A stretch of 10,700 nucleotides of DNA from Octopus sinensis (GCF_006345805.1 NW_021828820.1:1-10700), one strand, 5' to 3'; positions 166 through 10,700 are shown, counted from the first letter of the stretch. Numbers and translations: made by a program. Notes: a model not told the origin generated them from the sequence alone.

Positions 166-787
166 TTACTGGTCTTGGGCCTCCTGAACAGCACCATCAT
201 CTTTCGTGATCCTCTTGCTATTAATTTGTCCTTCCTCAGAGTATTCGTTTTCTGTCACTCATCATGTCTCCTCTTCATCGAGTTAGCTCCCCTTTGGTGA
301 GTGTTCCACACTGCATAATCTTTGTTGAGAATCAATGCTTTAGTCATTACGTCTTCGAAACCATGTTATATTCTACGAACATTCCTTCCAACGTCTTCTT
401 TAATGCAATCGTTTGGATGTATGCCAGAACACTGTCTTTAATGCCAATCAAATCCATGTATATTTTAAAATACTTGGAGGTGATCGCATCCCAGGTAATG
501 ACAATCGGAAGTATTTTGACTTTGTAAATGATTCTAATTCACTTGCCAGGATATCATATTTATGAAGTTTTTCAACTTCAACTGCTTTTAATTATCCACA
601 CACGTCACTCCAATCTCTATTAGCCATATGTGGTTTAATTTTTTGTCGTATAGGAAAATGTCCGGCTTGTTATATTGAATTTTGACTCGGTAGGGATAGT
701 AGTGTCAACTCGTAATTCAGCACGATCATTGGTAATTACGCTTTAGTAAGATCAACACCAGGAATGTGGCGTTTACTGTTCAATGTG
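166..787 (-). pseudogene. Frameshifted C-terminal relic (REL endonuclease domain and tail) of an R4/NeSL-type non-LTR retrotransposon ORF
   Basis: Manual minus-strand translation across frameshifts: ...SVITNDRAELRVDTTIPTESK / QYNKPDIFLYDKKLNHIWLIEIGVT (PD at ~660-665, IEIGVT at 601-620) / LKAVEVEKLHKYDILASELE (EKxxKY at 544-573) / YKVKILPIVITWDAITSKYFKIYMDLIGIKDSVLAYIQTIALKKTLEGMFVEY / acidic tail ending ...DDGAVQEAQDQ* (TAA at 166-168). The PD...E...K-x-x-KY order matches the REL domain of early-branching non-LTR elements. The clade assignment is from recall of similar sequences, not a search. Confidence 0.75.
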
Positions 788-789
788 TA

Positions 790-978
790 CAGTGGGCGCA
801 AAAAAAATCCGGTTTTCTAATTCTCTATTTTTTTTATATTGTGCGATATAATATTTTTTTTTTAATCTTAAATTTTAGTGAAAAGTAACTCTTATTTTTT
901 TATTTTGATTATTTTCATTATTTTTTTCAAGAGATATTCCAATTTAAATTTACAATGCGCAAAAAAAACCCGGTTTTT
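790..978. repeat. Left terminal inverted repeat of Tc1, with outer and inner direct repeats (probable transposase-binding sites)
   Basis: Outer motif GCGCAAAAAAAATCCGGTTTT (796-816) and inner motif GCGCAAAAAAAACCCGGTTTTT (957-978), separated by an AT-rich spacer. The arrangement is mirrored at the right end. Confidence 0.85.
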
Positions 979-992
979 AAAAAAATGTCAAA

Positions 993-1998
993 TTAATATT
1001 TAATATGCCGTCCTTTAGCCATAAAAACATCGTACACCCTTCTCGGCATGCTGTTTATGAGTTTCTGTATTAGATCTTTCGGCATATTTTTCCAAATTTC
1101 GATAATTTTATCTTTCAGCTCATGCATATTTTTTGGAGGATTTTCGTACAATTTACTTTTAATATATGCCCAAAGATGTTCTATTGGATTTAAATCTGGC
1201 GATTGCGGTGCCCAATCCAATAGTTTGACGCTTCTTTCGGCAAAGAAATCTTTCGTGATCTTTGATGTGTGTGGAGGAGCCATGTCTTGTTGGAATATGA
1301 ATTCATTCAAGCACATTTTCGCAGCGGACTCCCACAGATATTTGATAATATGTTCACATAAGTTGCTGAGTCATAGTTCCATTTATAATACTAGATTGCC
1401 TACTCCATAATACCCGAAACATCCCCACACCATTATTTTTCCCCCTCCAAATTTAACAGTGGAGATAAGTGCGATTTTTCTAGAGTGTGTTGTTTTTCCT
1501 ATAACAAAATTCCTTTTTTTGTGATTAAAAATTTCGAAACAGCATTCATCACTAAAAATAGTTGATTTCCATGACGTCATATTCAGTGCGATAAATTTTT
1601 TTGACAAGGAATATCGTTTTTCGATATTAATTTTAGACAGATACGGTTTTTTTTTGACACACACGTGAATATATTTCCTTTGTTTCAGATAATTCCCAAT
1701 TGTTCGTTTTGAGACGATTTTTCCTGTCAAAGAATGAAGATCCTTTGACAGGCAACGGGAAGATTTTTTCGGATTGTCAGAAACAAGCGTCAATAAAGTA
1801 TTTATATCATCATTATTAATGTCCTAGGTCTTCCAGAACCGGACAGTCTCTGTGTTGTTCCATATTTTTTGTATTTACGTATGTAATCTCCCACTGTTGA
1901 TCTGGGAATTTCTACTTCTTCTGAAATTTGTTTATATGTCCAATTAAGGAAATAAAGTTGAATAATTTGTCCTTTCACAATTTCTGAATACACGACAT
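993..1998 (-). pseudogene. Tc1 DD34E transposase, broken into at least three frames
   Basis: ORF fragments 1802-2029, 1383-1793 and 993-1316 join into one protein: HTH-like EIPRSTVGDYIRKY, GSGRPR motif, WKSTIFSDE (first D), TVKFGGGKIMVWGCF, IFQQDMAPPH (second D), WAPQSPDLNPIEHLW (E), and C-terminal SMPRRV...KGRHIKY. Exactly 34 residues lie between the second D and the E. The start is uncertain; the nearest ATG is at 1998 and needs a 1-nt correction. Confidence 0.9.
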
Positions 1999-2060
1999 CC
2001 AACAACAACAAAAATGACAACAATTTCAAATTTTTGAGAATAAAAGACTCAATATTAAAA

Positions 2061-2240
2061 AAAAACCGAGTTTTTTTGCGCTTAAAATTAAATTCAAGAT
2101 ATCTCTATGAAAAATAAAAAATACTTAAAATAAAAACATATCGATTTACATTCAAAATGATACTAAATTAAAAAAAATAATATAAATTATATTGAAAAAT
2201 TCGAAAAATAAGAAAACCGGATTTTTTTTTGCGCCCACTG
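2061..2240. repeat. Right terminal inverted repeat of Tc1 (upstream of the transposase), with inner and outer direct repeats
   Basis: Inner motif AAAAACCGAGTTTTTTTGCGC (2061-2081) and outer motif AAAACCGGATTTTTTTTTGCGC (2213-2234), followed by CCACTG and TA. Confidence 0.85.
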
Positions 2241-2242
2241 TA

Positions 2243-2280
2243 ATAAATTCTGGCATATAGCTGCGCGCACCTTACCAAAG
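2243..2280 (-). other. Probable short continuation of the REL-retrotransposon relic on the far side of the Tc1 insertion
   Basis: Removing Tc1 and one TA, and using the copy-2 version of this flank (5278-5315), gives a minus-strand reading ALVRCAQLICQNYYTLNSKRH. This resembles the region just after the CCHC/RH motif of REL elements. The match is short and one frame choice depends on which copy is used. Confidence 0.4.
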
Positions 2281-2475
2281 CCGCAGTGAAATTATTCCGG
2301 CGCTGGAGCTGCCACTGTTGTATGGCTTTACTCCGATCTCGGCTTCGCAGCATCAGTCTCCTTCGCTTCATGAACCCAAATCAGAACACTATATTCTCAA
2401 AATTTCCAACTACGGAAATCTAAGAAGATACCATTACGTATCCCTAAACAGGCTCGGATCTCAGCGGCAAACTGC

Positions 2476-2979
2476 TTGTGCGATCTTATCACTGATGCGC
2501 TAAGCTCCGGGGGGGACCATTCTTGGATCCGTCTCCTCTCTTTTGCACCTTGTGTGTTTGGACAAGCAATTGATGGTTCAGTACAAAAGAAGAGTCTCTC
2601 GGCTGCCATTAAGTCGAACTCTGCGAGATTGGATGTCTCATGGATTGATTTCGATTGTGAAGCGACCAATTTCCAAACGTGCATCACGGAAAAATCCCCC
2701 CAGTGGTTCAAAACCCAAGTTAGTCGTAAACTCATGGATGGCGACATCCGTGCGGCAGTTCGGGTCCTTTCGTCCGCTGATTCACTTGCTGAATCTACTG
2801 CCGAGACTTTGGAACACCTCAAAAACAAACATCCGATGCCCCCAGATGACTTACGGGAGTTTCCCACACGAGACAATGCAATTATACTGTCAATTTCTGA
2901 TGATGAAATTTTGGAAGGATTAAATCTTTCAGACCGAGTAGCAGTGGGGGATTTGATGGTCTCCGGCCGAGTCATATAA
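2476..2979 (+). pseudogene. N-terminal part of the CRE-like ORF, out of frame with the RT part
   Basis: ...KLMDGDIRAAVRVLSSADSLAESTAETLEHLKNKHP...EILEGL continues in another frame as SFRPSSSGGFDGLRPSHIKD directly into the ATG at 2985. This is the conserved pre-RT segment of non-LTR RTs. One extra base near 2921-2925 would fuse the two. Upstream sequence from ~2340 also aligns with the copy-2 ORF 5321-5959. Confidence 0.75.
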
Positions 2980-2984
2980 AGGAC

Positions 2985-5063
2985 ATGATTTCCCGATTGA
3001 CTATGGAGACTGGAATCCGCCTGATCAAGTGTATTACCAAGCTTGTCGAACGGATTGTCAATGCTGAGATTTCAGGCTTTGCAAGGGATCTACTTTTCTG
3101 TTCACACCTTATTGCTTTCCGAAAGAACGATGGAGGAGTCCGCCCCATTGCAGTCGGTAATGTCTTCCGGAGGCTCGCATGCAAAATTGCAGCCCGAAGA
3201 GTCTGTCCCCGTGTTGCCGCTGAATTATCTCCAGTCCAACTGGGAGTTGGTGTTTCCAACGGATGTGAAGCTGCTGTCCACGCGACAAGAGCTTTTTTTT
3301 CACCTGACACAAGACATTCCCCAAATTCCTTTGCGGTGAAGCTGGATATCTCAAACGCGTTCAACAGTCTGAGAAGGGACTGTATGCTGGAATCGTGCTC
3401 GCAGCGTACCCCAGAGATCATGAGTCTGGCTCACCTTGCTTACGGGTCCGAAAGTTCGCTTGTCTTTGACAAACACATTGTCCGTTCACGGACTGGAGTC
3501 CAACAAGGTGACCCTCTTGGGCCCTTACTATTCGCTCTGTCAATCGACGAGGTGGCTCGTAATGTAAAGACACCTCTCAACCTTTGGTACCTTGACGATG
3601 CCACTATTGGTGGCCCTGTTGATGTCGTCTTGGATGAGTTATATAAAATTGTTCCTGCCCTGGCAAAAATGGGGCTGATAATCAACACCAAAAAAACTGA
3701 GATCATAAATATCTCAGTCCCAATTCAAGACTTTGGCTTAGTAATGGAAAAGATTTCAGAAATCTTGCCAGACACAAAACAAACACGCCTCAACGATGTT
3801 TATTTTCTTGGGTGTCCTTTCGGAGAGTCCGAAGTGCAAAACCACCTCAGAGCTAAGAGTGTCGAAATGTCCCGTTTTACTGAACGCCTCTCTCTACTCG
3901 ACTCCCACACGGCCTTTTTCCTCCTCAAAAATTGCATCCACGTGCCCAAACTGTTATATTTATTGAGATGCTCGCCCTGCTTTATACAAGATGAAATATT
4001 GCATTCTATCGATGATACGTTAAGATTGTGTGCCGAGTGGATCCTAAATGTCCGTTTCGATAATGATGGGTGGACCCAGTGTAAACTACCTCTTAATTCT
4101 GGCGGAGCTGGCCTAAGATCCGCCCTGGACCTTGCCCTCCCAGCTTTCCTGTCCTCTCACTCATCCTGCCGAAGGCTATCCTTGGAGATTCTACATAAAT
4201 CCCCCGAATCTTCTTTGGACAGGCCTTTTGAAGATGGATGTATGCTGTGGAAGGAATCAGGATTAAAATTCCCGATCCAAACATCACTCCAACAGAGCTG
4301 GGACAAATTACGCTGCGAATTCACCGCAGACAACCTGGCAATGAGGCTCGACCAGCACCGCCTCGCCTGCTTACGCTCTGCAGCTGTGCCACACAGTGGG
4401 TCATGGCTGAATGCTATGCCAATTGCTGGCCTCGGAACATTATTAGAGGATGACTGCATGCGTATCGGTACTGCACTGAGACTCGGACTTGACATCTGCG
4501 AACAACATCGTTGTAGATGTGGAAAAATGGTTGACGTCAAAGGTGTACACCCACTCTCTTGCAAACGAAGTGCTGGCCGAGCTCCTCGGCACTCCGCTAT
4601 TAACAATGTTATCTTAAGAGCTCTTGAGTCGGCGGGCTTCCCCTCGATCCTAGAGCCAGTGGGCTTAGATCGTGGAGATGGGAAAAGACCCGATGGAATG
4701 ACCACTTTTCCCTACTCCTGTGGAAAATCGTTGGTTTGGGATTCAACGTGTGTTGACACCCATTCCAAAACTAATATGATCTCTTCTGCTGTTTCTCCAG
4801 GTTCTGCAGCAGATGCTGCAGAGCAAAGAAAAATTGCCAAATACGCAAATCTTGGACAACGGTACCGCTTCGTACCTATCGCTGTGGAGACTTCTGGGGT
4901 AACCGGCCCTCTTACGACTTCTTTCATCAGAGAAGTCGGAGGAAAAGTTGCTAGGCGACGTGGGGAGCCTCGAGAAGTGTCATGGTTATTCCAACAAATT
5001 GGAATAGCTGTCGTTCGCGGCAATGCACACTCCATCATGCGTGCAACCGCAAGTGCCTTTTAA
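2985..5063 (+). CDS. Reverse transcriptase + CCHC zinc knuckle + restriction-like endonuclease (CRE-clade-like), uninterrupted 692-aa portion
   Basis: RT motifs: RKNDGGVRPIAVGNVFRRL, QLGVG..GCEAAVH, VKLDISNAFNS, GVQQGDPLGPLLF, WYLDD (YLDD at 3588-3599), GLIINTKKTE, FLGCPFG. Zinc knuckle CRCG-x7-H-x3-C, then RHSAINNVI. REL: KRPDG...WDSTC...RKIAKY...PIAVETSG. The ATG at 2985 is probably internal rather than the true start. Confidence 0.92.
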   Translation: MISRLTMETGIRLIKCITKLVERIVNAEISGFARDLLFCSHLIAFRKNDGGVRPIAVGNVFRRLACKIAARRVCPRVAAELSPVQLGVGVSNGCEAAVHATRAFFSPDTRHSPNSFAVKLDISNAFNSLRRDCMLESCSQRTPEIMSLAHLAYGSESSLVFDKHIVRSRTGVQQGDPLGPLLFALSIDEVARNVKTPLNLWYLDDATIGGPVDVVLDELYKIVPALAKMGLIINTKKTEIINISVPIQDFGLVMEKISEILPDTKQTRLNDVYFLGCPFGESEVQNHLRAKSVEMSRFTERLSLLDSHTAFFLLKNCIHVPKLLYLLRCSPCFIQDEILHSIDDTLRLCAEWILNVRFDNDGWTQCKLPLNSGGAGLRSALDLALPAFLSSHSSCRRLSLEILHKSPESSLDRPFEDGCMLWKESGLKFPIQTSLQQSWDKLRCEFTADNLAMRLDQHRLACLRSAAVPHSGSWLNAMPIAGLGTLLEDDCMRIGTALRLGLDICEQHRCRCGKMVDVKGVHPLSCKRSAGRAPRHSAINNVILRALESAGFPSILEPVGLDRGDGKRPDGMTTFPYSCGKSLVWDSTCVDTHSKTNMISSAVSPGSAADAAEQRKIAKYANLGQRYRFVPIAVETSGVTGPLTTSFIREVGGKVARRRGEPREVSWLFQQIGIAVVRGNAHSIMRATASAF

Positions 5064-5093
5064 TCATAGACTAACTTATTTTAATAATTAAAA

Positions 5094-5275
5094 AAAAACC
5101 GAGTTTTTTTGCGCATTTTAAAATTAAATTCAAGATATCTCTATGAAAAATAAAAAATACTAAAATTAAAACATATCTATTTACATTTCAAAATGATACT
5201 AAATTAAAAAAAATAATATAAAATTTATATTGAAAAATTCGAAAAATAAGAAAACCGGATTTTTTGCGCCCACTG
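5094..5275. repeat. Second (duplicated) copy of the Tc1 right TIR, complete with both direct repeats and followed by TA
   Basis: AAAAACCGAGTTTTTTTGCGC (5094-5114) through AGAAAACCGGATTTTTTGCGCCCACTG (ending 5275), then TA at 5276-5277. It matches 2061-2242 apart from small indels. Confidence 0.92.
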
Positions 5276-5315
5276 TAATAATTCTGGCATATTAGCTGCG
5301 CGCACCTTACCAAAG

Positions 5316-8120
5316 CCGCAGTGAAATTACTCCGGCGCTGGAGCTGCCACTGTTGTATGGCTTTACTCCGAATCTCGGCTTCGCAGCATCAGTCTCCTTC
5401 GCTTCATGAACCCAAATCAGAACACTATATTCTCAAAATTTCCAACTTACGGAAATCTAAGAAGATACCATTACGTATCCCTAAACAGGCTCGGATCTCA
5501 GCGGCAAACTGCTTGTGCGATCTTATCACTGATGCGCTAAGCTCCGGGGGGGACCATTCTTGGATCCGTCTCCTCTCTTTTGCACCTTGTGTGTTTGGAC
5601 AAGCAATTGATGGTTCAGTACAAAAGAAGAGTCTCTCGGCTGCCATTAAGTCGAACTCTGCGAGATTGGATGTCTCATGGATTGATTTCGATTGTGAAGC
5701 GACCAATTTCCAAACGTGCATCACGGAAAAATCCCCCCAGTGGTTCAAAACCCAAGTTAGTCGTAAACTCATGGATGGCGACATCCGTGCGGCAGTTCGG
5801 GTCCTTTCGTCCGCTGATTCACTTGCTGAATCTACTGCCGAGACTTTGGAACACCTCAAAAAACACATCCGATGCCCCCAGATGACTTACGGGAGTTTCC
5901 CACACGAGACAATGCAATTATACTGTCAATTTCTGATGATGAAATTTTGGAAGGATTAAATCTTTCAGACCGAGTAGCAGTGGGGGATTTGATGGTCTCC
6001 GGCCGAGTCATATAAAGGACATGATTTCCCGATTGACTATGGAGACTGGAATCCGCCTGATCAAGTGTATTACCAAGCTTGTCGAACGGATTGTCAATGC
6101 TGAGATTTCAGGCTTTGCAAGGGATCTACTTTTCTGTTCACACCTTATTGCTTTCCGAAAGAACGATGGAGGAGTCCGCCCCATTGCAGGTAATGTCTTC
6201 CGGAGGCTCGCATGCAAAATTGCAGCCCGAAGAGTCTGTCCCCGTGTTGCCGCTGAATTATCTCCAGTCCAACTGGGAGTTGGTGTTTCCAACGGATGTG
6301 AAGCTGCTGTCCACGCGACAAGAGCTTTTTTTTCACCTGACACAAGACATTCCCCAAATTCCTTTGCGGTGAAGCTGGATATCTCAAACGCGTTCAACAG
6401 TCTGAGAAGGGACTGTATGCTGGAATCGTGCTCGCAGCGTACCCCAGAGATCATGAGTCTGGCTCACCTTGCTTACGGGTCCGAAAGTTCGCTTGTCTTT
6501 GACAAACACATTGTCCGTTCACGGACTGGAGTCCAACAAGGTGACCCTCTTGGGCCCTTACTATTCGCTCTGTCAATCGACGAGGTGGCTCGTAATGTAA
6601 AGACACCTCTCAACCTTTGGTACCTTGACGATGCCACTATTGGTGGCCCTGTTGATGTCGTCTTGGATGAGTTATATAAAATTGTTCCTGCCCTGGCAAA
6701 AATGGGGCTGATAATCAACACCAAAAAAACTGAGATCATAAATATCTCAGTCCCAATTCAAGACTTTGGCTTAGTAATGGAAAAGATTTCAGAAATCTTG
6801 CCAGACACAAAACAAACAACACACGCCTCAACGATGTTTATTTTCTTGGGTGTCCTTTCGGAGAGTCCGAAGTGCAAAACCACCTCAGAGCTAAGAGTGT
6901 CGAAATGTCCCGTTTTACTGAACGCCTCTCTCTACTCGACTCCCACACGGCCTTTTTCCTCCTCAAAAATTGCATCCACGTGCCCAAACTGTTATATTTA
7001 TTGAGATGCTCGCCCTGCTTTATACAAGATGAAATATTGCATTCTATCGATGATACGTTAAGATTGTGTGCCGAGTGGATCCTAAATGTCCGTTTCGATA
7101 ATGATGGGTGGACCCAGTGTAAACTACCTCTTAATTCTGGCGGAGCTGGCCTAAGATCCGCCCTGGACCTTGCCCTCCCAGCTTTCCTGTCCTCTCACTC
7201 ATCCTGCCGAAGGCTATCCTTGGAGATTCTACATAAATCCCCCGAATCTTCTTTGGACAGGCCTTTTGAAGATGGATGTATGCTGTGGAAGGAATCAGGA
7301 TTAAAATTCCCGATCCAAACATCACTCCAACAGAGCTGGGACAAATTACGCTGCGCGATTCACCGCAGACAACCTGGCAATGAGGCTCGACCAGCACCGC
7401 CTCGCCTGCTTACGCTCTGCAGCTGTGCCACACAGTGGGTCATGGCTGAATGCTATGCCAATTGCTGGCCTCGGAACATTATTAGAGGATGACTGCATGC
7501 GTATCGGTACTGCACTGAGACTCGGACTTGACATCTGCGAACAACATCGTTGTAGATGTGGAAAAATGGTTGACGTCAAAGGTGTACACCCACTCTCTTG
7601 CAAACGAAGTGCTGGCCGAGCTCCTCGGCACTCCGCTATTAACAATGTTATCTTAAGAGCTCTTGAGTCGGCGGGCTTCCCCTCGATCCTAGAGCCAGTG
7701 GGCTTAGATCGTGGAGATGGGAAAAGACCCGATGGAATGACCACTTTTCCCTACTCCTGTGGAAAATCGTTGGTTTGGGATTCAACGTGTGTTGACACCC
7801 ATTCCAAAACTAATATGATCTCTTCTGCTGTTTCTCCAGGTTCTGCAGCAGATGCTGCAGAGCAAAGAAAAATTGCCAAATACGCAAATCTTGGACAACG
7901 GTACCGCTTCGTACCTATCGCTGTGGAGACTTCTGGGGTAACCGGCCCTCTTACGACTTCTTTCATCAGAGAAGTCGGAGGAAAAGTTGCTAGGCGACGT
8001 GGGGAGCCTCGAGAAGTGTCATGGTTATTCCAACAAATTGGAATAGCTGTCGTTCGCGGCAATGCACACTCCATCATGCGTGCAACCGCAAGTGCCTTTT
8101 AATCATAGACTAACTATTTT
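5316..8120 (+). mobile_element. CRE-clade-like non-LTR retrotransposon, copy 2
   Basis: Near-identical to 2281-5082, with the same stop context GCCTTTTAATCATAGACTAAC. Confidence 0.85.
5321..8102 (+). pseudogene. Frameshifted RT-REL ORF of copy 2 (fragments 5321-5959, 6021-7004, 6872-7492, 7380-8102)
   Basis: The fragments reproduce the copy-1 protein. Lesions relative to copy 1: 1-nt loss near 5860, 3-nt loss near 6188 (IAVGN to IAGN), ~5-nt gain near 6815 and ~1-nt gain near 7355. It also carries the frameshift shared with copy 1 near 5958. Confidence 0.85.
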
Positions 8121-8163
8121 AATATTAAAGAAAGAAAAGAAATGAGAGAACAAGAATCCGAAC

Positions 8164-10700
8164 TAATTAAGAAGATCATTGTCTCCAGAAAACCTTCCAT
8201 TGAAGATCCAACAGGGAATGTGCACAAGTCTGAGTCGTCGCCGTTATGTTCGGAAAGGGGAGTAGAACCGACTCCGTTACAACAGACATATGCATAGATC
8301 TGAAGGAAATCCTTAGATTAGGTGATTCTGGTGGCCAACGCATCACACGCGTGTAATTAAGAAGATCATTGTCTCCAGAACCTTTTCCATTGAAGATCCA
8401 ACAGGGAATGTGCACAAGTCTGAGTCGTCGCCGTTATGTTCGGAAAGGGGAGTAGAACCGACTCCGTTACAACAGACATATGCATAGATCTGAAGGAAAT
8501 CCTTAGATTAGGTGATTCTGGTGGCCAACGCAACACACTAATAGAAACCAACGAGCGCAACCGCGTGTAATTAAGAAGATCATTGTCTCCAGAAAACCCT
8601 TTCCATTGAAGATCCAACAGGGAATGTGCACAGGTCTGAGTCGTCGCCGTTATGTTCGGAAAGGGGAGTAGAACCGACTCCGTTACAACAGACATATGCA
8701 TACATCTGAAGGAAATCCTTAGATTAGGTGATTCTGGTGGCCAACGCAACACACGCGTGTAATTAAGAAGATCATTGTCTCCAGAAAACCCTTTCCATTG
8801 AAGATCCAACAGGGAATGTGCACAAGTCTGAGTCGTCGCCGTTATGTTCGGAAAGGGGAGTAGAACCGACTCCGTTACAACAGACATATGCATACATCTG
8901 AAGGAAATCCTTAGATTAGGTGATTCTGGTGGCCAACGCAACACACGCGTGTAATTAAGAAGATCATTGTCTCCAGAAAACCCTTTCCATTGAAGATCCA
9001 ACAGGAATGTGCACAAGTCTGAGTCGTCGCCGTTATGTTCGAAAGGGGAGTAGAAACGACTCCGTTACAACAGACTATGCATACATCTGAAGAAATCCTT
9101 AGATTAGGTGATTCTGGTGGCCACGCATCACAGTAAAGAAACCAACGAGCGCAACCGCGTGTAATTAAGAAGATCATGTCTCCAGAAAACCCTTTCCATT
9201 GAAGATCCAACAGGGAATGTGCACAGGTCTGAGTCGTCGCCGTTATGTTCGAAAGGGGAGTAGAACCGACTCCGTTACAACAGACATATGCATACATCTG
9301 AAGAAATCCTTAGATTAGGTGATTCTGGTGGCCAACGCAACACCGCGTGTAATTAAGAAGATCATTGTCTCCAGAAAACCCTTTCCATTGAAGATCCACA
9401 GGGAATGTGCACAGGTCTGAGTCGTCGCCGTTATGTTCGAAAGGGGAGTAGAACCGACTCCGTTACAACAGACATATGCATACATCTGAAGGAAATCCTT
9501 AGATTAGGTGATTCTGGTGGCCAACGCAACACCGCGTGTAATTAATAAGATCATTGTCTCCAGAAAACCCTTTCCATTGAAGATCCAACAGGGAATGTGC
9601 ACAGGTCTGAGTCGTCGCCGTTATGTTCGGAAAGGGGAGTAGAACCGACTCCGTTACAACAAACATAGCATACATCTGAAGGAATCCTTAGATTAGGTGA
9701 TTCTGGTGGCCACGCAACACACGCGTAATTAAGAAGATCATTGTCTCCAGAAAACCCTTCCATTGAAGATCCAACAGGGAATGTGCACAAGTCTGAGTCG
9801 TCGCCGTTATGTTCGAAAAGGGGAGTAGAACCGACTCCGTTACAACAGACATATGCATACATCTGAAGGAAATCCTTAGATTAGGTGATTCTGGTGGCCA
9901 ACGCAACACACGCGTGTAATTAAGAAGATCATTGTCTCCAGAAAACCCTTTCCATTGAAGATCCAACAGGGAATGTGCACAAGTCTGAGTCGTCGCCGTT
10001 ATGTTCGGAAAGGAGTAGAACCGACTCCGTTACAACAACATATGCATAGATCTGAAGGAAATCCTTAGATTAGGTGATTCTGGTGGCCAACGCAACACAC
10101 GCGTGTAATTAAGAAGATCATTGTCTCCAGAAAACCCTTTCCATTGAAGATCCAACAGGGAATGTGCACAAGTCTGAGTCGTCGCCGCCTTATGTTCGGA
10201 AAGGGGAGTAGAACCGACTCCGTTACAAAGACATATGCATACATCTGAAGGAATCCTTAGATTAGGTGATTCTGGTGGCCAACGCAACACACGCGTGTAA
10301 TTAAGAAGATCATTGTCTCCAAAAACCCTTTCCATTGAAGATCCAACAGGGAATGTGCACAGTCTGAGTCGTCGCCGTTATGTTCGGAAAGGGGAGTAGA
10401 ACCGACTCCTTACAACAGACTATGCATACATCTGAAGGAACTCCTTAGATTAGGTGATTCTGGTGGCCACGCAACACACGCGTGTAATTAAGAAGATCAT
10501 TGTCTCCAGAAAACCCTTTCCATTGAAGATCCAACAGGGAATGTGCACAAGTCTGAGTCGTCGCCGTTATGTTCGAAAAGGGGAGTAGAACCGACTCCGT
10601 TACAACAGACATATGCATACATCTGAAGGAAATCCTTATATTAGGTGATTCTGGTGGCCACGCATCACAGTAAAGAAACCAACGAGCGCAATCGCGTGTC
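8164..10700. repeat. Tandem (satellite-like) array: 13 units, 192-bp consensus, with a 216-bp variant
   Basis: The unit start TAATTAAGAAGATC recurs at about 8164, 8354, 8568, 8760, 8952, 9162, 9350, 9539, 9726, 9917, 10106, 10298 and 10485. Units 3 and 4 are exactly 192 bp. Units 2, 5 and 13 carry an insert of about 24 bp (TAATAGAAACCAACGAGCGCAACC in unit 2). Confidence 0.97.

Follow-up and report, generated by a model that had tools for sequence, protein, structure and literature searches.

In the unplaced contig VCDQ01006210.1 of the Octopus sinensis assembly GCA_006345805.1, a Tc1-like DNA transposon lies within the coding sequence of a retrotransposon that codes for a reverse transcriptase (RT) and a restriction-like endonuclease (RLE), and a 3-kb segment that begins in the right end of the transposon and finishes at the 3′ end of the retrotransposon is present twice in tandem. 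The whole contig, 10,700 bp, is the stretch of DNA analysed here and is referred to as the window. A nested insertion followed by a microhomology-mediated tandem duplication is, in our judgement, the probable origin of this arrangement. The initial annotation of the window had proposed something different, namely, a composite element at 790-5275 in which a Tc1 with two alternative right ends carries a CRE-like retrotransposon as cargo. We find that the locus is ordinary repeat-region wreckage rather than a demonstrated new mobile element, and that the whole contig is debris of transposable elements (TEs) plus satellite.

The proposed history has three steps. First, a poly(A)-type RT-RLE element would have inserted through target-primed reverse transcription (TPRT) beside or into DNA made of a 190-bp satellite, the inserted element being 5′-truncated in the coding sequence of its PHD finger (5′ end ~769, 3′ end ~8124). 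Second, a Tc1-like transposon with inverted repeat/direct repeat (IR/DR) ends would have entered a TA located 20 bp from the 5′ end of the RT element, duplicating the TA (788-789 and 2241-2242). Third, the 3,036-bp segment extending from Tc1 position 2054 to the 3′ end of the RT element would have been duplicated head-to-tail, the route being replication slippage, unequal sister exchange or microhomology-mediated break repair or, alternatively, aberrant gap repair following an attempted Tc1 excision. The first two steps can be read in the sequence itself, while the order of the steps and the DNA-level mechanism of the third are what we infer from it. The second Tc1 right end would then be a passive by-product, and both element types are defective at this locus.

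The layout is, from left to right, the Tc1, a TA, the first copy of the RT body, a copy of the Tc1 right end, a second TA and the second copy of the RT body, followed by an A-rich stretch and the satellite. The features that concern the two elements are as follows (TIR, terminal inverted repeat; ORF, open reading frame; DR, direct repeat; HTH, helix-turn-helix).

769-787 (+): 5′ stub of the RT-RLE retrotransposon; tblastn across the joined site, PHD profile
788-789 (no strand): left TA target-site duplication of the Tc1; a single TA gives the codons tgT Aat (C N)
790-2240 (-): Tc1-like transposon, 1,451 bp, IR/DR ends, non-autonomous; termini, TIR alignment, Pfam
790-978 (+): left TIR; outer DR 796-822, inner DR 957-978
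993-2029 (-): transposase pseudogene, DD34E spacing; three-frame translation, ORF list, Pfam
2054-2240 (+): proximal right TIR; inner DR 2060-2081, outer DR 2207-2234; 2054 is the left duplication breakpoint
2241-2242 (no strand): right TA target-site duplication of the Tc1
2243-5086 (+): RT-RLE retrotransposon body, copy 1; short 3′ untranslated region, ends ..AATAATTAAA
2243-2979 (+): rest of the PHD finger and N-terminal domain, copy 1; frameshift near 2925-2935, stop at 2977-2979
2985-5063 (+): RT-linker-CCHC-RLE ORF, 692 aa; RVT_1, AlphaFold model, homologue alignment
5087-5275 (+): distal right TIR, duplicate of 2054-2240; outer DR 5245-5269, inner DR 5093-5114
5276-5277 (no strand): TA carried along with the duplicated unit; no independent target duplication
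5278-8124 (+): RT-RLE retrotransposon body, copy 2; extra private indels

The Tc1-like transposon and its insertion site

Termini of the form TA-CAGTGGGCGC are found at 788 (+), 2242 (-), and 5277 (-), and the window has exactly three matches to the 18-mer TACAGTGGGCGCAAAAAA, at 788-805 (+), 2225-2242 (-), and 5260-5277 (-) (0 of 200 dinucleotide shuffles). When the left end, 790-985, is set against either right end in reverse complement (2050-2240 or 5083-5275), the alignment has ~74% identity over ~208 columns. Each end is a TIR of ~190 bp with an outer and an inner DR (GCGCAAAAAAAA[T/C]CCGGTTTT), and both right ends terminate in GCGCCCACTG, followed by TA. The alignments bear out the earlier description of the two right ends as each having the inner and outer DRs and then a TA. 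The left TIR can indeed be paired with either right TIR, given one left end and two complete, correctly oriented right ends. The outermost pair, 790 (+) and 5275 (-), has identical 16-nt termini and both DRs, which is the geometry of a composite-type element. The TA duplication, the long TIRs that start with CAGTG and contain DR pairs, and a transposase with paired HTH domains and DD34E place the element among the Tc1/mariner transposons.

The transposase is a pseudogene. Pieces of minus-strand ORF at 993-2029 match DDE_3, HTH_Tnp_Tc3_2, and HTH_SB in Pfam, and by three-frame translation there are 34 residues from the D of FQQDMAPPH to the E of NPIEHLW. There is no ATG, one frameshift is found near 1800, and two in-frame stops are found near 1377-1391. 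The ORF of an autonomous Tc1 would begin with a start codon and run on unbroken; the resident transposase, with these lesions, is defective. The protein nearest to the transposase among 5.8 billion proteins is 48% identical and comes from a non-octopus source; no partner transposase more than 48% identical was found in that set, with the proviso that TE ORFs are often omitted from annotations. The octopus Tc1-like family is apparently undescribed.

The location of the Tc1 was established from the PHD finger. Proteins homologous to the RT protein, with ~50% identity and a length of ~900-1,100 aa, have at their start a PHD-type finger with the pattern C-x2-C-x12-C-x2-C-x4-H-x2-C-x14-C-x2-C. On the 3′ side of the Tc1, the window codes for NKFWHISCAHLTKAAVKL(F/L)RRWSCHCC, with one 1-bp indel there in each copy. 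The 21 nt on the 5′ side, 768-788, code for GVYCSMC, and the final Cys codon closes with the T of the TA; the stub at 769-787 holds the second Cys pair of the finger. When 789 is joined to 2243, the product reads ..GVYCSMC|NKFWHISCAHLTKAAVKLFRRWSCHCC, and one TA restores the PHD frame (CSMC|NKFWHISC). In tblastn, three homologues (P0003, P0008, and P0038) have N-termini that align across the joined empty site. On the PHD profile of the homologues, the joined peptide scores 34.8 bits, versus 25.8 bits without the left flank, and none of 544 control T|A flanks from the window reaches 34.8 bits. Since the PHD frame is restored over one TA, it follows that the Tc1 integrated at a TA inside the retrotransposon ORF, and we take the TA pair at 788 and 2241 to be the target duplication of that insertion.

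Upstream of ~769, stops close the frame, and the Cys pair with which a PHD finger begins is absent. The retrotransposon is therefore 5′-truncated at that point. The sequence KCPAC, encoded at 659-673, was considered as the missing Cys pair and rejected: it lies ~38 codons upstream rather than ~13, there are stops between, and it belongs to a minus-strand RT remnant in the left flank.

Because the Tc1 is inside the retrotransposon, interrupting the coding sequence of its PHD finger, the supposed cargo of 790-5275 amounts to no more than 2.85 kb from the 3′ part of an already 5′-truncated element, and is no intact retrotransposon. The enclosed RT part has neither a 5′ end nor a start codon, and its frameshift is found in another genomic copy as well.

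The tandem repeat and the second right end

Alignment of 2032-5098 to 5058-8137 gives 3,046 identical columns out of 3,094 (~99%). The repeat has a period of ~3,036 bp and consists of the units 2054-5089 and 5090-8125, each of which contains a Tc1 right end (189 bp), a TA, and 2.85 kb of retrotransposon. That is, 5087-5277 is the first 190 bp of the second copy of the unit and no isolated extra end.

The Tc1 sequence reads ...CTCAATATT-A9-CCGAG (2046-2068), copy 2 of the RT body ends ...TTTTAATATTAAAGAAAG (8112-8130), and the novel junction reads ...TTTTAATAATT-A9-CCGAG (5078-5100), i.e., ...AATAATT-A9-CCGAG. The A-run at the novel junction is nine, as in Tc1 2055-2063, with no additional tail. 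The breakpoints fall in a microhomology of 6-9 bp (ATTAAA plus the A-run) that is common to Tc1 2050-2063 and the 3′ terminus of the RT element, a pattern characteristic of slippage, unequal exchange or microhomology-mediated repair. Within the Tc1, the breakpoint is ~187 bp from the terminus. A duplication made by the transposase was considered and rejected on this ground, as transposase cleavage falls at CAGTG/TA. The junction being inside the Tc1 and not at CAGTG/TA, the second right end was therefore not made by transposition. Since the distal TA and right end were copied by the duplication, they provide no independent evidence of a TA-flanked element. Of the cis features ascribed to 790-5275, then, the TA-bounded geometry stands, while the distal TA, being a duplicated copy, loses its value as evidence that the span is a TA-flanked element.

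These observations bear directly on the proposal that the left and distal right ends form a mobilisable composite Tc1, 790-5275, that moves retrotransposon sequence. We consider it extremely unlikely. Tc1-family transposases act in trans, and the cis requirements are apparently all present, as the DRs, termini, and flanking TA are intact. For Ac/Ds it is established that ends of separate nearby elements move the intervening DNA (PMC4270019, PMC9910405). Against this, the resident transposase is dead, with no relative above 48% identity among the 5.8 billion proteins; the distal end comes from a duplication in which transposase had no part; and what is called “cargo” is a 3′ fragment that is not functional. 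In addition, the unit contains a complete proximal right end that would be a competitor for transposase, and no second copy of the composite, nor any Tc1 terminus, was found in 49 kb of four other loci. It is likewise very unlikely that the 3-kb unit of Tc1 right end plus RT body is a propagating chimera, either a macro-Tc1 (790-5275) moved by a transposase supplied in trans or a retrotransposed transcript that begins in the Tc1 end and scatters solo Tc1 ends. If true, it would couple a cut-and-paste system with a copy-and-paste system, and if the unit turned up at other loci, it would be of interest as TE hitch-hiking across classes.

Might the second copy have arisen through RNA? A transcript that begins within the Tc1 right end, or reads through it, and extends to the RT poly(A) site could be reverse-transcribed to give a head-to-tail dimer with a 5′-transduced Tc1 end, either by a new insertion at the A-rich tail of the old copy or by a template jump in a single TPRT event. 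The unit does stop exactly at the 3′ terminus of the RT element, and TPRT in this family goes with poly(A), truncation at the 5′ end, and twin priming (see below). Moreover, 5′ junctions of long interspersed nuclear elements (LINEs) typically show microhomology, and R2-type RTs jump templates in vitro. The sequence shows, however, no poly(A) tail or target-site duplication (TSD) that would belong to a second insertion, copy 1 being trailed by exactly the A9 that belongs to the Tc1, and an ORF that is frameshifted and without its N-terminus would require that the protein be supplied in trans. A DNA-level duplication accounts for the same junction with fewer assumptions, and we regard the RNA route as improbable.

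The two copies were compared with each other and with two further genomic copies of the family, L001 (VCDQ01004651.1) and L003 (VCDQ01001066.1). The RT bodies of the window differ from each other by ~1 clean substitution in 2.84 kb, versus a divergence of ~0.5% from L001 and L003. All five differences between the copies that are located in the stretch shared with L003 have copy 1 matching L003 in a by-eye comparison, and private indels of copy 2 at 5863, 6189, 6816, and 7356 break the reading frame further. Repeats of the contig in general differ from each other chiefly by small indels. Indels so outnumber substitutions that the differences have the look of consensus errors from long reads, and the duplication is therefore either an artefact or very recent.

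An assembly artefact, in which a single genomic unit was expanded to two by a long-read assembler or polisher, is the likeliest of the rivals, although we think it unlikely. The ~17 indel events versus ~3-5 substitutions between the copies have the profile of such consensus error, the window is one entire small unplaced contig of an assembly built from PacBio and Hi-C data (Li et al. 2020, as cited in 10.1101/2023.05.16.540928), and an exact-protein look-up finds the 692-aa ORF (2985-5063) on record on VCDQ01006210.1 only; a 240-aa ORF has no record in the same look-up. Yet a direct repeat of 3 kb is within typical long-read length and is usually resolved rather than invented, and the junction is specific, with unique sequence on both sides. 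PacBio missed-adapter artefacts, for their part, give inverted and not direct repeats.

Four points weigh against nested insertion followed by tandem duplication. In place of an empty site from the same family, the argument for insertion is drawn from homologues only ~30% identical in the RT 5′ region; no uninterrupted N-terminus of the same family was found, and when the joined N-terminus was searched against proteins, the one hit was P0121, a copy truncated at window ~2683. The Tc1-end part of the unit (2054-2242 versus 5087-5277) is about tenfold more divergent than the remainder, with differences at 7 of 189 bp versus 10 of 2,840 bp. These TIR differences are mostly indels in A/T runs and are probably due to long-read error. 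The microhomology is short and A-rich, and it does not tell the DNA-level mechanisms apart. Finally, the 3-kb unit is counted as two on the evidence of a single assembled contig, unplaced and 10.7 kb long.

A dispersed family of RT-RLE elements

The ORF at 2985-5063 matches RVT_1 in Pfam (E 1.8e-15). In an alignment of 23 homologues, the residues of a CCHC knuckle, C510, C512, H522, and C526, and those of the RLE, P569-D570, D586, and K616, are in invariant columns. The AlphaFold (AF2) model of the 692-aa ORF has a pLDDT of 88.5. The best folds for the model are the R2 proteins of Bombyx (R2Bm) and zebra finch (R2Tg), over ~750 columns, with E ~1e-20 and TMq 0.59-0.67. In contrast, LINE-1 ORF2p matches the model in the RT part only, with TMq of at most 0.48. 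Sequence similarity to R2 is limited to the RT (E 5e-9), and the R2 proteins are the best sequence matches in the PDB. On its predicted structure, the element is an RLE-type retrotransposon of the class without long terminal repeats (non-LTR), with the R2 architecture, that is, RT-linker-RLE.

Elements of this architecture include CRE, R2, R4, NeSL, and HERO (PMC4640811, PMC5678591). The octopus family shares with them the RT, the helical linker, the CCHC, the C-terminal PD-(D/E)xK endonuclease, and N-terminal zinc-binding motifs. It differs in having an N-terminal PHD finger instead of C2H2/Myb, in the spacing of the knuckle, CX1CX9HX3C versus the canonical CX2-3CX7-8HX4C (PMC5678591), and in its dispersed copies with A-runs at their 3′ ends.

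A single ORF is not seen. A frameshift and stop at 2925-2979 (GLNLSDRV...GRVI*, then the ATG at 2985) part the N-terminal domain from the RT; they are present in both window copies and in L003, and the 5′ end is missing. The frameshift and stop ...GLNLSDRVAVGDLMVSGRVI*, followed by ATG, are located at 2925-2985 and 5960-6021 of the window and at 13670-13745 of L003, which is an independent insertion. The near-invariant motif SFxPGSSGGxDGLRPxH is put out of frame. The source element may have been already broken and mobilised in trans, or the family may use two ORFs or recoding.

The initial annotation had taken the retrotransposon to be CRE-like and normally site-restricted. As to the first, the support extends to the R2-like RT-linker-RLE architecture only, and the target that defines the CRE clade, the spliced-leader (SL) RNA gene, is absent: an E-value search of the whole window found no Rfam family anywhere. 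The second is contradicted by two other copies, which lie at unrelated loci, are 5′-truncated, and have 3′ A-runs, one of them with a TSD.

The L003 copy is truncated at a point equivalent to window ~2683, ends in A23, and sits inside a FAM200/GTF2IRD2-like TE gene. The L001 copy, at 9502-11323, is composed of an inverted segment, equivalent to 3384-4694, and a direct segment, equivalent to 4642-5090, with a 53-bp overlap. It is bounded by a 14-bp TSD, ATTATGTTAAAATT, is located near an innexin gene, and has a composite A-rich tail, A9-CCATGGAATTT-A4. The L001 structure reads as a 5′ inversion of the twin-priming type, an inverted-5′ pattern familiar from LINE-1. Neither satellite nor a Tc1 terminus was seen in L001 or L003. 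In all, three copies have three unrelated flanks, the window copy being at the edge of a satellite, which is at odds with the one conserved target of a site-specific RLE element. We also considered whether the satellite could be an RNA-gene target (SL, 5S, or snRNA, i.e., small nuclear RNA) and rejected it, as the Rfam search of the whole window was empty.

Four of the RLE clades are mostly target-specific, and HERO is largely non-specific (PMC4640811). In its behaviour, the octopus family resembles the mostly non-specific HERO more than CRE. The 5′ truncation and A23 of L003, together with the inversion, 53-bp overlap, and 14-bp TSD of L001, are insertion hallmarks of the LINE-1 type, whereas the enzyme of the octopus family is of the RLE type and that of LINE-1 is of the apurinic/apyrimidinic endonuclease (APE) type. 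A dispersed RLE family with a PHD finger, A-tails (A9-A23, in two copies), and L1-like hallmarks is relevant to the idea that site specificity is general among RLE elements.

A sequence of ~55-60 bp (CAATTGGTGGTAAATTGTGTTAATGATTGTGCTAATGTGGTTTCAACTATCAAAG) occurs twice, ~108 bp apart, at 13281-13440 of L003, just upstream of the truncated RT.

Related systems and the flanking sequences

Several known arrangements resemble the one described here. Tc1/mariner elements nested in a LINE within repeat-rich or heterochromatic DNA are alike in that a TA-duplicating transposon interrupts a retrotransposon ORF amid TE fragments and satellite. The octopus locus adds to such ordinary nested insertions the 3-kb tandem duplication, which provides a spare right end for the DNA transposon. 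In maize and rice, Ac/Ds elements undergo alternative transposition and form macrotransposons (PMC4270019, PMC9910405, PMC3239180), and termini that belong to no one simple element are likewise close together and in an orientation that could permit movement of the intervening DNA. There, however, mobilisation and rearrangements have been shown genetically, with an active transposase, and nothing at the octopus locus points to such movement; the superfamily is hAT rather than Tc1/mariner, and the extra end of the octopus locus comes from a duplication rather than a second insertion. A non-LTR retrotransposon physically combined with a DNA transposon is found in Xenopus laevis, where Tx1L elements lie inside Tx1D DNA transposons (Christensen et al. 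2000, as cited in PMC6719617). Tx1L is of the APE type, specifically targets a site in Tx1D, and is found in many composite copies. In the octopus, the nesting is reversed, a DNA transposon having entered a retrotransposon, and there is a single locus and no sign of targeting. The locus is a worked example of how a tandem duplication can make a “second transposon end”, and TA-flanked geometry alone is no sign of a composite.

The features of the flanks are as follows.

711-768 (+): degenerate partial satellite-like unit, unit positions ~15-77; adjoins the RT 5′ stub
8125-8163 (+): A-rich stretch (AAAGAAAGAAAAGAAA..) plus 22 nt unassigned, separating the RT 3′ end from the satellite
8164-10700 (no strand): tandem satellite, at least 13 units of 190-192 bp; reaches the contig end

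The segment 711-768 aligns locally to the satellite unit with a score of 22, compared with a shuffle mean of 10.6 (sd, standard deviation, 1.9), and 0 of 300 shuffles reach that score. The retrotransposon therefore seems to have inserted at the margin of a satellite array; of the satellite-like unit upstream, only 711-768 is left. On the other side, 8125-8163 is not satellite-like, and its A-rich stretch is probably a decayed poly(A) tail. The satellite at 8164-10700 matches no Rfam family. Three of its units (8543, 9137, and 10674) contain a 24-26-nt insert, AGAAACCAACGAGCGCAACCGCGTGT, which gives variants of ~216 bp at irregular spacing.

Further to the left, 350-698 (-) is the decayed C-terminal remnant of a second, different RT-type retroelement. 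Its 63-aa piece at 350-538 (-) matches the extreme C-termini of RVT_1 proteins of 700-1,100 aa, with E down to 5e-14 in an exhaustive HMMER search, and BLASTP and Pfam find no similarity between the left-flank peptide and the RT ORF. A KPDI...IEI motif at 591-698 suggests that this remnant, too, is of the RLE type. Finally, an 82-bp stretch at 19-100 of the window is 96% identical, in inverted orientation, to 2050-2130 of L001, 8 kb from the RT copy there, and is likely a short interspersed repeat.

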